Shown piece by piece: positions 49,119-54,139 of a stretch of 64,000 bases of DNA (position 1 is its first letter; each line of letters begins with the position of its first letter). The notes beneath the pieces were generated by a model. It did no database searches. It worked only from the letters and a program-made list of their open reading frames with translations, and was not told where the DNA came from. The stretch is taken from positions 682,001-746,000 of the forward strand of contig CBFDEM010000004.1 in assembly GCA_965603825.1 (NCBI GenBank), in the 5' to 3' direction. The translations under genes were made by a program, and so were the position numbers. Source of the stretch: Blepharisma stoltei ATCC 30299. Lineage: Eukaryota > Protista > Ciliophora.

Positions 49119-50396
49119 TAACTTTATTTAAATGAGGTTTCACATTTTAGCAAAATTCATAATTATAGCTTTATATGCTATTTTGTTCTATAAATATAAG
49201 AGTCTTTTACTTGGAGTTTATTTTGTATTAAATAAATTCTTGGAAAATTAGATTTTATAATGAATTACTCAAGCGATTAATTTAAAGAAGAAAATGCCTT
49301 CTAATGAATTTTAAACAAATTTCAAGATTATATCGATGGCATAAATAATCAAGCTTAAGAGCATTCTCTTAATCATCTTCTAATGGCTCTCAAATTGGTA
49401 CTTGATAACTTGAAGGTGCAGACTTTAAGTTATGATCACCGTGACCTATGTATGACTCTTCATTTCAATTTACTCAAATATCACTGCCAAGTCCCAAGAT
49501 CATTTTATTCGGCTTTTGGAATTTTGCATAGAAATTGATTTAAACCTAATTGATTCAAACTTGCAGATAATACAGCTTTTGGGTCAATTAGAGATAATAA
49601 ATTCCAAGAGTTGATTTTCAGAATATATGACATAATCTGAAAAATAATTAGTTAGACCAAAAAAGAAGAAGGCATTTTCATTATCATAAACTCAGATCCG
49701 ATAAGCAAAGGATTAGAAAAACATTTTAGAATTACTCAGCCATAGAAACAAACCTAATAGAAAGAAGCTGAAAATATGTTGCTTGGCCGCTGATAAATGC
49801 AAAGGATTCTTTTTTGAATATTATCTACATATAATACACGAAGCCAATGAAATAGGCTTATCTACAATTTATTATGATATAAAAAGGGAGAAGAGCAATA
49901 AAGTGCCATGGATGCCAAAATGAGGAGAAATTTCGCCAAAATCTTCTCATTTACATCGAAAATTTTTCATAGAATTAATTCTTATTTCCCTATAAGTAAA
50001 ATCAAATTTAAATACTCTACAATCATCTACAAAATTAATATAAATAGCATTAAGACGAGCTGAAAAACAGCTTTTATTAGAGTTAAAAATTTATCAATAA
50101 GCTAAAATAGCTATTAAAATTCTGGATCTTCATCTTTAATAAAAAAATCTATATCTATTTTCAATAATCAGTTTTCATCAAATTTTGGTATCATTAATTT
50201 TCTAAAAGGGCAATAAGTTAATATACTAATTCCTTATATAGTTTAATTTAAACATTTTTACAGCAAGATTAAATAAAAAAAGGCTTAATCAAAAATTATA
50301 TAGGCTATAAGTTTAATTTTAATAAATTAATTTCAAAACAGCTTTAATTTTTTTATTAAAATCAAATTTCATGAATCTAATTTTTAAATTTAAAAT

Positions 50397-52520
50397 ATGA
50401 AGAAAGAGGGACTCAGAGGAAACTATCGATTATTAAAACGAAAACCAAAGCAAAGGGAATGCCTATCTGAGCTGTCTCTAAATAATATCGAAAATCGAAG
50501 TCAGCAGAAAGGTAAAGAAATTACGCAAAAGAAATGCTTCAGGCCTTTTGATGCTCTTCCAACAGAAATCCTGATTTATATTTTTGATTTTTTCTCAGCA
50601 AAAGACTTAGTGATGAAAATTCAATTAGTCTCTAAATTATGAAGGCAGCTAGCCAATACTCCAATGCTATGGAAGAACTTGGAATCAAAACAAATAGAGA
50701 TGAAATGGATGGTGAGATGCATAAAATGCTTAGTCGAGCGAAGATCCAAAGGAAAGCTCTTTAGAGGAATTCTAAGAAGCCTAGATGCCCCTGTGATGCT
50801 CAGAAAAGTGTATTTAGATGTAACAAACGCTGGATATGATGATGGAGTGCCCACTTCCTTATTGAGAGAAATCAGTTACCTATCAGAACTCTCACACCCA
50901 AATGTTGTTAAGCTCATTGGCGGAGAAGTCTCGGGCAAAGTAGTCTACATCTGCACAGACTATGAAGAATACAACCTGAAAGAATATATTAAAACCTCTA
51001 CATCTGATAAGAATAAAATTTCAAATGAAAATGTTCGAGATCTAATCAGGCAGCTATTCGTAGGACTTCAATATATCCACAACAAAGGAATTGTCCATAG
51101 AAACCTAAAGCCTGACAATATTCTTATATCAGGCTCAGGAACAGTAAAAATTGCTGATTTTACTTTGTCAAGGCTAACGTCAATTCCTCATGGCCAATAC
51201 ACTCCAGAAGATCCAAAAGAAAGAGATAGGTCAGGAAGAGAAGCAAGGAGACTATGGTATAGAGCTCCTGAACTGTTATTCCGCAAAGACATATATGGTT
51301 TTGAGGTAGATGTATGAACTGTTGGATGCTTAATGGCAGAGTTAATAACTGGCCAAGCATTATTCAACGGCGAAAGCGAAATTGAACAATTGTTCAAAAT
51401 TTTTAAAGTGACAGGAGTTCCTTCTGATATTTACCCTATTCAGGCAAAATCGTTCCCAAGCTGAACACCTATTAACTTCCCTGATGTTATAGCTCTAAAA
51501 AATTCAAAAACATTTAAAAATGTTTTTGCGAAACTCGTACCTGCAAGAGAGCAAATTTTTACAGTACTAAGGGAAATGGGAAAAATCATTGGAGAAGATG
51601 GGCTTGATTTATTGCAGAAATGTTTGGATCCAAACCCTGCAACACGAATAACAGCTGCTAAGGCTTTAAGCCACCCATTTTTAGCATCTCAATCCCCTCA
51701 AATATTGTGCCCTTCTTTTGAGTTTGAAATCCCAAATTATATAGCCCAGCTCCATGCTTTAGAATCTGAGCTGCTTCCTTCGAACTATTTGAATTCTCAA
51801 TCAAATATAAGCCACTCTATGAGAAGTATACTGATTGATTGGCTTATCGATGTAAGTGTCCATTTTGAGGTTAACGATGAAACTCTTCATCTTGCTGTCA
51901 GCTATATAGATCGAGTACTAGGCAAGTTGGCTATTGATAGATCTAAGCTTCAGCTTGTCGGAGTAACTTGTATGAAAATAGCTGATGTTTTCCATGAAAG
52001 ATCTAAAGAATATTATCGGCAAGAAAATTCAATTGAATACGCTTACATTACAGCAGATGAATATTCCCCATCTCAAGTAGTTACAATGGAAAAAGATATT
52101 TTAAATCTTCTGAAATTCAGGCTACTGTCTCCAACTATTTTATTTTTCATGAAAGCTTATCAATCATTACTAAATGTTGACCAAGAGACTTATAGAATTG
52201 CTCAATATTTATCAGACCTGATGCTCCTATCTTATGATAGCATTTTTTGCGCTCCTTCTCTATTAGCCTCTGCAATCCTATATATAAGCTGTGCTTTTAC
52301 TCAAAGATTTGTAGAATTCCAAGACAAAAAATTATTTTTCCCAAAATACTCAAATGAAGAATTTGAGCATGCAGTTCAGCATGTAAAAGAGATCTGGCTT
52401 GAGGCTAGAAGCAATCCTCAATATACAAGGCTTGAGTCAATAAATCACAAATACCAAGATATCAATCCTAAGTCATTGTGGCCTCCAACTCTTTTGTTTG
52501 AAAATTGGATATACAGCTAA
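50397..52520 (+). CDS. F-box + CDK-like pseudokinase + cyclin (A/B-type box) fusion protein, 707 aa
   Basis: Three ORFs in one frame joined by three TGA=Trp. F-box [12 protein letters not shown]...LVSKL[W]; [24 protein letters not shown][W][16 protein letters not shown]; cyclin MRSILIDWL...KLQLVGVTC. Confidence 0.92.
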
Positions 52521-52550
52521 TTTTATAAAATAAATTTTATTATGCAGTAA

Positions 52551-53291
52551 TTATGAATTAATTGATGTGTGGCAAATTGGGCAATGGGGATTAGAGATTA
52601 ATCAGCCGTCAATGCATTCGGGATGAAATTTGTGCCCGCATTTTTCGAGGGTTTTTGAATTTGTATTGGTTTTTATTAGACTGATACAAATTGAGCAGAG
52701 ATGGTCAGAGTTGGTATTGGGGATTGGGATATTCTGAGTAGAAGTTACGATTTCTTCTGAAGGAAGGGTATTTTGGATTTCATCATTATGGCGATGGCTG
52801 TAGATCTCTTGCTCAGCAGCGTATGATTGATTTATTATCATTTCTAGTTGCATTTGTTCATATTCTTCATCTCTATATTGTTCCTGCATTATATTGGTTT
52901 GCAGTATCCTTAATAGCTGCCTTGGATTAATTCTCCTCCTTCGTCTATTACGCTGTTTTAATTCTTCGTTTTCACTTTTGAGATTTTTTATAAGTTCTTT
53001 TTGCTTCCCGATTTGAACTCTGACTTGAGCTATATGCTAAATATATTTTACATTTCTTTGTTTTCTATCTAATTCCCTTATCTCTTCCAATAATATTTTA
53101 AAATCTTTATTTTCTGTCGAATCCATCGTCACTTCACTTGGCTTTTCGGTCTCAATAGATCCCATTTGCGATTTTCAATCTGAAACTATTGACTGCGATT
53201 TCCTAACACGCTGCCTATTTTTTCCTACTTGTGCTGTAAACCGCGAATTAGACGATTTATTTCGAATTCGGAAATCCGGAGATTTCTCCAT
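52551..53291 (-). CDS. Coiled-coil + C-terminal RING-H2 E3 ligase; one intron
   Basis: CSIC...CGHKFHPECIDG[W]LISNPHCPIC; intron 53037-53051. Confidence 0.82.
53037..53051 (-). other. 15-nt intron
   Basis: gtaaaatatatttag; contains an in-frame TAG. Confidence 0.82.
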
Positions 53292-53377: not shown

Positions 53378-54139
53378 ATGCTCAAAGTTCTTGTGGGTGC
53401 TAAAAGAGTTATTGATGCCTATGCCAAAGTTCGTTTACTCCCTGATAACTCAGGTGTTGATCTCAGTACAGTGAAGATGGCCATGAACCCTTTTTGTGAA
53501 ATTGCTGTTGAAGAGGCAGTCAGATTGAAAGAATCAGGAAAAGCATCAGAGGTTACTGTATTAACTATTGGTCCTAAACAAGCTTCTGATGTCCTAAGAG
53601 CTGCACTCGCAATGGGAGCAGATAAAGCTGTTCACGTTCACGTTGAAGAAAGAATTGATAGAGATATTCTCCCATTAAGCATTGCACAAATTTTCAGAGC
53701 ACTTATAGCAAGAGATAACTACAGTTTAGTCCTTCTTGGAAAACAGTCAATTGATTCAGATAGTAACCAAGTCGGACAGCTGTTAGCTGGGCTACTTAAC
53801 TGGCCTCAGGCAACTTTTCTAAATAAATTAGAAATCAACCAAACAGTAAGGGCAACGCGTGAAATAGATGGTGGGTTACAGACTATAGAGTTCCCTCCTC
53901 CTGCTGTTTTAACGTGTGATTTAAGACTAAATACCCCTAGATTTACAGCAATCCCTTCAATAATGAAAGCTAAGAAAAAACCATTGGAAACATTAACCCC
54001 TGACAAGCTTGGTGTAGACTTAACTCCTGGCTACCAAACACTGTCTGTTGAGCCTCCAGACAAGAGAAAAGCAGGAATAAAGGTAGAAAGCGTTGATCAG
54101 CTCCTTGACAAGCTCCGCAATGAAGCCAAAGTAATATAA
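53378..54139 (+). CDS. ETFB: Electron transfer flavoprotein beta subunit
   Basis: KRVID, MNPFCEIAVEEA, GKQSID, REIDGG, DLRLNTPR. Confidence 0.96.
   Translation: MLKVLVGAKRVIDAYAKVRLLPDNSGVDLSTVKMAMNPFCEIAVEEAVRLKESGKASEVTVLTIGPKQASDVLRAALAMGADKAVHVHVEERIDRDILPLSIAQIFRALIARDNYSLVLLGKQSIDSDSNQVGQLLAGLLNWPQATFLNKLEINQTVRATREIDGGLQTIEFPPPAVLTCDLRLNTPRFTAIPSIMKAKKKPLETLTPDKLGVDLTPGYQTLSVEPPDKRKAGIKVESVDQLLDKLRNEAKVI

Follow-up and report, generated by a model that had tools for sequence, protein, structure and literature searches.

A Blepharisma stoltei protein joining an F-box, a pseudo-CDK and a cyclin in one chain belongs to an ancient family of ciliates and dinoflagellates

The macronuclear genome of the heterotrich ciliate Blepharisma stoltei ATCC 30299 has been reported as 41 Mbp in 64 telomere-to-telomere sequences, with UGA reassigned to tryptophan and introns of 15–16 nt (PMC9942806). 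Within a 64,000-nt stretch of the assembly (the window; contig 4:682001-746000 of 41,464,486 bases in 64 contigs), to which all positions below refer, we analyzed a plus-strand gene at 50397-52520 that encodes an F-box, a pseudokinase resembling cyclin-dependent kinases (CDKs) and a cyclin in a single chain. The gene is one frame of 707 sense codons followed by a TAA stop. Three in-frame TGA codons (50640, 51315 and 51462) split it into four open reading frames (ORFs) under the standard code; translated with TGA as Trp, it is identical to the public protein P0151. These codons align with Trp positions conserved in CDKs and F-boxes, and TGA and TGG interchange at the same Trp positions between this gene and a paralogue on contig 32. 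Because TGA sits on conserved Trp, swaps with TGG in the paralogue, and is reported as a Trp codon in this genome (PMC9942806), we read it as Trp here. An initial annotation, made from the sequence alone, had proposed one 707-aa frame read through these codons, and the frame, the TGA positions and the other sequence features all lie where it had placed them. The features of the gene and its product, all on the plus strand, are as follows.

50380..52547, +, transcript extent, as spanned by the longest transcript-like contig without gaps (run X1)
50397..52520, +, coding sequence, 707 codons plus TAA, equal to P0151
50397..50540, +, basic N-terminal region (aa 1-48), predicted disordered; predicted local distance difference test (pLDDT) 40-51 for residues 1-40 and 64 for 41-50
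50547..50681, +, F-box (aa 51-95, LPTEIL...LWRQL); PF12937 and PF00646, pLDDT 93-96
50640..50642, +, TGA encoding Trp82, the conserved F-box Trp; W in 88/99 relatives
50700..51689, +, CDK1/2/3-like pseudokinase (aa 102-431); matches to CDK3, CDK2 and CDK1 at E 5e-47 to 2e-44, with Pfam and fold matches
50736..50756, +, ERRSKGK (aa 114-120), occupying the position of the Gly-rich loop; at least 90% conserved in the family
50802..50804, +, R136 (in VMLRK) in place of the beta3 Lys, CDK2 K33; R in 94/99 and K in 5/99
50850..50870, +, PTSLLRE helix (aa 152-158), equivalent of PSTAIRE; R157 and E158 invariant, in the predicted cyclin contact
51096..51104, +, HRN (aa 234-236), with Asn at the position of the catalytic Asp; invariant in 99/99
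51156..51164, +, DFT (aa 254-256); Mg-binding Asp D254 kept and invariant, only the Gly changed
51198..51272, +, activation loop (T-loop, aa 268-292); T269 corresponds to CDK2 T160 and is followed by Pro and an 11-aa insertion
51315..51317, +, TGA encoding Trp307, the CDK 'DxW' Trp; invariant in the family
51462..51464, +, TGA encoding Trp356, the CDK 'FPxW' Trp, by the CDK and family alignments
51750..52124, +, Cyclin_N fold (aa 452-576); best match cyclin A2, with B1 next
51819..51842, +, MRSILIDW (aa 475-482), MRAIL-type hydrophobic patch; conserved in ciliate-type members
51996..52028, +, family-specific cyclin insert (aa 534-544), shortly after V531; part of the contact predicted with the PTSLLRE helix
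52131..52460, +, Cyclin_C fold (aa 579-688), by Pfam

The gene is expressed as a single, intron-free transcript. Contigs from four runs of one study cover gene bodies in this stretch and leave the AT-rich spacers at zero depth, and contigs of a neighbouring minus-strand gene lack two 15-nt segments, as spliced mRNA of B. stoltei would. Since intergenic DNA is uncovered and the short introns of the neighbour are missing, we treated the runs as RNA. In each of the four, one contig crosses the whole ORF with zero gaps, from 50380 or 50407 to 52482 or 52547 and through all three TGA codons, and it is these gapless contigs that establish the one intron-free transcript proposed in the initial annotation. 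Contig depths from these runs allow neither a ranking of expression nor its timing within the life cycle.

Searches with Pfam recovered F-box-like, Pkinase, Cyclin_N and Cyclin_C already on the four separate ORF pieces. On full-length P0151 the scores were 161.6 bits for Pkinase, 106 bits for Cyclin_N and 39.6 bits for Cyclin_C, and we assign the F-box by motif because F-box-like PF12937 (44.6 bits; cut-off 24.3) and F-box PF00646 (31.9 bits; cut-off 20.5) both exceed their gathering cut-offs. Both the predicted order of F-box, pseudo-CDK and cyclin in one chain and the four domains expected from translation with TGA as Trp are thereby borne out. The F-box aligns with solved Skp1-bound F-boxes, namely those of Fbw7, FBH1, Fbxo44 and Skp2. 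The genome itself contains 11 matches to Skp1, including a canonical 161-aa Skp1 (L013:1171-1653), along with 18 cullin matches and 7 CKS matches. The Skp1 family appears expanded, with four of its 11 matches clustered on contig 19 (G000 contig 19: 75501-76462 and 88064-88827).

The kinase portion belongs to the CDK class by its best sequence and fold matches and by its PSTAIRE-type helix, T-loop Thr and GDSEID-type motif. Its nearest solved folds, from Foldseek, are all cyclin-bound CDK2 or CDK3 (template modelling (TM) scores of 0.85-0.89). Alignment to CDK2 and CDK3 displays the PSTAIRE-like helix, GESEIE(Q) at the position of GDSEID, and the Thr of YTPE with its following insertion, as the initial annotation had described, and WYRAPE is kept. 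The features of an active CDK are replaced at three points, where ERRSKGK stands for the GxGxxG loop, R136 for the beta3 Lys and N236 for the Asp of HRD. N236, encoded by AAC at 51102-51104, aligns with CDK2 D127; the equivalents of CDK2 K129 and N132 and of the alpha-C Glu are retained. Of the four catalytic elements first thought lost, the Gly-rich loop, the beta3 Lys and the HRD Asp are thus gone, but DFT does not count as a loss since its catalytic Asp, D254, is kept. On these substitutions the kinase is presumably unable to transfer phosphate by the normal mechanism. Because HRN is invariant in relatives (99/99) and shared by the contig-32 paralogue, the lesions are ancient and reflect neither local decay nor sequencing error, two explanations that the initial annotation had left standing. 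In CDK2, three basic residues hold phospho-T160. The T-loop Thr and the equivalents of all three of these residues are retained here, and R259, the equivalent of CDK2 R150, is R or K throughout the family. The 11-aa insertion that follows YTPE is nearly invariant across ciliates and dinoflagellates and probably forms an exposed loop (pLDDT 57-75 over the insert).

The C-terminal part has the Cyclin_N and Cyclin_C folds and MRAIL patch of an A/B-type cyclin, with matches to cyclin A2 at E 2e-32, B1 at 3e-27 and cyclin F at 1.6e-17. MRSILIDW aligns with MRAILVDW of cyclin A2, in agreement with the proposal that the substrate patch is kept. The residues of this RxL-binding patch (M475, I478, L479, W482, D485, L518 and Q519) are conserved among ciliate-type members, with divergence in the dinoflagellate type. 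At the positions that align with K266 and E295 of cyclin A, the conserved Lys/Glu pair of the cyclin box, the Glu is retained as E565 and the Lys is V531, followed by a 4-residue insert. The family-specific insert, with consensus E[RQ]SKEYY[RK]QEN, adjoins the position of this Lys.

The whole 707-residue chain was modelled with AlphaFold2 on an alignment of 99 ciliate and dinoflagellate members and assessed by pLDDT and the predicted TM score (pTM) only. The model has a mean pLDDT of 88.3 and a pTM of 0.89, and confidence drops only in residues 1-45, in the T-loop insert, in the linker between kinase and cyclin, and in one short loop of the cyclin; for a three-domain chain, this pTM implies a confidently predicted mutual arrangement of the domains. 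The kinase (residues 100-436) and cyclin (residues 437-707) were also folded as two chains alongside three controls, and passed, scoring 0.81 against 0.52 for the best control, a mark attained by 51/78 solved complexes and 2/108 mismatched pairs. At least 74% of contacts were shared between runs, and partner pLDDT was at least 79. Predicted contacts join the PTSLLRE helix (147-164), the beta4-beta5 turn and the T-loop (259-269) to cyclin residues 528-536, 542-546 and 558-577, which together form the canonical CDK-cyclin face with the family-specific cyclin insert included. The prediction is therefore one of docking in cis between kinase and cyclin by way of the PSTAIRE-like helix, the outcome anticipated when C-helix docking was put forward as a test.

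Only two copies of the gene occur in the genome, the one described here and the contig-32 paralogue, a protein of 701 aa that is 61% identical and shares the domain order, HRN and DFT. Between the pair, synonymous sites are saturated (proportion of synonymous differences, pS, ~0.8), and the proportion of nonsynonymous differences (pN) is 0.22 for the kinase and 0.23 for the cyclin, with 0.31 for the F-box (F-box pS 0.78); the linker and tails are much freer. The paralogues are under strong purifying selection, F-box included, and from the pN values of 0.22 and 0.23 the dead kinase is therefore constrained at least as much as the cyclin.

An exhaustive profile-free search with a junction-spanning piece, together with three word-indexed searches, recovered hundreds of proteins that share the F-box/kinase/cyclin architecture. 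P0151 matched P0001 at E 1e-215, and the same search returned members from Paramecium, Tetrahymena, Stylonychia and Ichthyophthirius. Across the 99-sequence alignment, N236, R235, K238, N241, D254, R157, E158 and T269 are invariant, the stretch Y268-T269-P270-E271-D272-P273-K274...W287 is mostly so, and ERRSKG and R136 are at least 90% conserved. Named carriers of this alveolate type are Stylonychia, Halteria, Tetrahymena, Ichthyophthirius, Paramecium, Polarella and Effrenium.

A sister type is found in oomycetes (Phytophthora, Pythium, Aphanomyces, Saprolegnia, Albugo, Achlya and others), labyrinthulids, and brown and other ochrophyte algae. The dinoflagellate Durusdinium also carries it (P0326), while other dinoflagellates carry the alveolate type. 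Stramenopile-type proteins (P0315-P0405) have the F-box, HRNLKPKH (D127 to N and N132 to H) and DFALVR, keep the beta3 Lys and lack the T-loop insert. Of the 96 sister-subfamily proteins scanned, 90 had HRN and the other 6 gave no match to the pattern. The Asp to Asn change is the only catalytic lesion common to both subfamilies, and on this account the sequences fit a history in which catalysis was lost early and the nucleotide pocket then drifted separately in each. A quick unrooted tree of kinase domains separated three clean clusters: the alveolate type, the stramenopile type and canonical CDKs. As the tree is unrooted, no common origin of the two fusion subfamilies is claimed from it. By its kinase and cyclin in one ORF and transcript, its HRD Asp to Asn change and its full-length homology, the B. 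stoltei protein is a member of the integral-cyclin CDK family. Sequence comparison thus places it in an ancient family of ciliates and dinoflagellates, to which a subfamily of oomycetes and other stramenopiles is sister.

Two further sequences were noted. P0315, labelled Batrachochytrium salamandrivorans, is the only fungal-labelled protein with the architecture among the matches listed; it is 85% identical to a metagenomic stramenopile-type member, and assembly contamination is possible. P0302, from a metagenome (Logan) contig of an AT-rich eukaryote, is a different single-chain fusion, of 569 aa, joining a CKS domain (PF01111), a cyclin box and an apparently active CDK with the motifs GQGSYGTV, HRDIKPEN and DFGLSK, in which the cyclin precedes the kinase.

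Members of this family have been in print for some time. Four CDKs with integral cyclin domains were confirmed by reverse-transcription PCR (RT-PCR) in Phytophthora infestans, all with Asp to Asn in subdomain VIb and with relatives in Paramecium, Tetrahymena and Theileria, and a role in stability was proposed (Judelson & Ah-Fong 2010, PMC3019232). In Stentor, SteCoe_2757 was described as a divergent CDC2-like protein with two cyclin domains (Reiff & Marshall 2017, bioRxiv 10.1101/168187). The B. stoltei protein shares with these a CDC2-like kinase followed by Cyclin_N and Cyclin_C in a single ORF and the Asp to Asn change in VIb, and, with the Phytophthora proteins, a demonstrated single transcript, by RT-PCR there and by RNA contigs here. 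It differs from the oomycete type in ERRSKGK, the Arg for the beta3 Lys, HRNLKPDN, the 11-aa T-loop insert and the cyclin insert. The word F-box occurs in neither PMC3019232 nor 10.1101/168187, and in a Tetrahymena Cip1 paper among the matches it occurs only in a reference. Public product names do record it: 'cyclin-dependent kinase with F-box domain' is used for Achlya hypogyna and Thraustotheca clavata, and the UniRef name 'Cyclin-F' for the B. stoltei paralogue, Stylonychia and many oomycetes. These annotations recognise the same three-domain order automatically, as names only, without function, structure or partner. The literature searched yielded no functional study of an F-box/pseudokinase/cyclin fusion. 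The doubt about novelty voiced at the outset was therefore justified, given HRN pseudo-CDK-cyclin fusions published in 2010 and 2017 and an F-box in public names; the protein is a new member of a family published at sequence level since 2010. Beyond the two papers, our alignments place an F-box throughout both subfamilies and indicate that the T-loop Thr-Pro, its Arg partners and the 11-residue insert are invariant, and that the cyclin interface insert is co-conserved. The structure predictions support docking in cis.

Two known systems offer comparisons for what such a protein might do. In complexes of SCF (Skp1-cullin-F-box) ubiquitin ligases (E3), SCF-Skp2/Cks1 with CDK2-cyclin A is the assembly for p27 ubiquitylation, and presents a bound CDK inhibitor to the ligase. 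Entries in the PDB such as 7b5l were among the matches. In both cases an F-box protein is physically coupled to a CDK-cyclin A-type pair, but SCF-Skp2 uses separate polypeptides and an active CDK, whereas the B. stoltei protein is one chain with a dead kinase. Metazoan cyclin F (FBXO1) likewise joins an F-box and a cyclin box with a MRAIL-type patch in one chain, and is described as a cyclin that serves an E3 rather than kinase activation (PMC12232547, PMC6792013). Cyclin F lacks a kinase domain and does not bind a CDK, whereas here a dead CDK is predicted to occupy the CDK face of the cyclin. The B. stoltei protein is not a cyclin F orthologue by kinase domain or by cyclin box, and because the cyclin box is closer to A2 (2e-32) and B1 (3e-27) than to cyclin F (1.6e-17), the likeness is likely convergence.

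Two other genes lie near the fusion gene. Tail-to-tail with it is the small minus-strand gene at 52557-53257, whose two 15-nt introns, at 52734 and 53037, are spliced out in each of the four runs; the ORF piece of this gene at 52602-52889 has a RING-H2-like Cys/His pattern (CSIC...CGHKFHPEC). A plus-strand ORF of 253 aa at 53378-54139 resembles the electron-transfer-flavoprotein beta subunit and has the highest contig depth in the stretch. Its contigs start only at 53656, and the missing 5′ part may reflect a filter for conserved sequence rather than biology.

Together with the Skp1 and cullin genes of the genome, the F-box match suggests that the fusion may bind Skp1 and act in an SCF as a receptor or decoy. 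On balance, and by analogy with known ligases, we think it somewhat probable that the protein is an SCF substrate receptor with a dead CDK-cyclin recognition module. In this scheme the F-box would dock on Skp1-Cul1, and the pseudokinase and cyclin would be locked in cis in the shape of an active-like, cyclin-bound CDK in which phosphate transfer is impossible. That module would then serve as the substrate-recognition domain of the ligase. Its MRAIL patch could capture RxL/Cy-motif proteins and its kinase surfaces CDK inhibitors or Cks-type partners, and these CDK-cyclin binders would be presented for ubiquitylation, in a mode resembling metazoan cyclin F or a hard-wired SCF-Skp2/CDK2-cyclin A without orthology to either. 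Several points weigh against this receptor reading. Skp1 binding, E3 function and the substrates are inferred; dinoflagellate-type members have a degenerate F-box (no LP) and a diverged MRAIL patch; and the Lys of cyclin A that contacts the CDK (K266) is Val here, so the kinase-cyclin interface is remodelled. The docking score may owe its pass to solved CDK-cyclin complexes memorised by the model, and shows likeness rather than binding, and the RNA status of the four runs is a guess (label 'RNA?').

A non-degradative role fits the same data, and it is possible, if considerably less probable than the receptor, that the protein is a decoy or scaffold whose F-box controls only its own turnover or location. 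Such an idea was raised for the Stentor homologue (10.1101/168187), a stability role was suggested for the oomycete proteins (PMC3019232), and the invariant T-loop Thr with its Arg partners fits a module held in a partner-binding shape. Yet both subfamilies retain the F-box, in ciliates, dinoflagellates and stramenopiles alike, and it is under purifying selection (pN 0.31 against pS 0.78); in the model it sits rigidly against the kinase (pTM 0.89), a geometry that suits a receptor better than a degron. Alternatively, the cyclin could act in trans by binding a separate active CDK and activating or targeting it, with the pseudokinase as a displaceable autoinhibitory or regulatory lid. The genome has many canonical CDKs of ~300 aa and the fold is that of a complete A/B-type cyclin, but the cis interface is confidently predicted and lies on the canonical face. 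Both partners carry a family-specific insert at that face (TNAGxDDG ahead of the helix, and the cyclin insert), and the two are co-conserved, which points to a permanent cis pair and makes the trans role unlikely.

Catalysis by a non-canonical mechanism despite HRN is more improbable still. The DFG Asp, K238, N241 and alpha-C Glu are invariant and some predicted pseudokinases in general retain activity (10.1101/168187), but the catalytic base is Asn in every member, a charged ERRSKGK takes the place of the Gly loop, and the beta3 Lys is Arg in 94/99. The sister subfamily, moreover, has lost a different set (N132 to His) and shares only D127N, a pattern resembling drift after loss of catalysis. 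Finally, the division of the frame into four pieces under the standard code could suggest three separate TGA-ended ORFs, a mis-joined gene model or a decaying pseudogene. The chance of such an artefact is close to nil: the TGA codons fall on conserved Trp and alternate with TGG in the paralogue, UGA is reported as Trp for the genome, a single gapless contig crosses the ORF in four runs, and the architecture is conserved in hundreds of proteins under strong purifying selection. We rejected the separate-ORF and pseudogene readings on these grounds.

Returning to the receptor, a more detailed form of it can be proposed only tentatively. The alveolate subfamily might be a hard-wired, single-chain counterpart of SCF-Skp2/Cks1/CDK2-cyclin A, a permanent E3 receptor whose dead CDK-cyclin 'bait' attracts CDK inhibitors and RxL proteins. 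It might be switched by phosphorylation at the invariant T-loop Thr-Pro, with the 11-residue insert as a lineage-specific docking or regulatory element.

The F-box, CDK and cyclin are three players of cell-cycle proteolysis, here found in one chain. Its strong constraint despite a catalytically dead kinase offers a natural experiment on how CDK-cyclin surfaces may be used apart from phosphorylation, and the F-box, the invariant T-loop features and the predicted cis docking are testable handles in tractable ciliates. If the hard-wired, phosphorylation-switched form of the receptor reading is true, ubiquitin ligases in a large part of eukaryotic diversity would read CDK-docking signals directly, with no kinase step.

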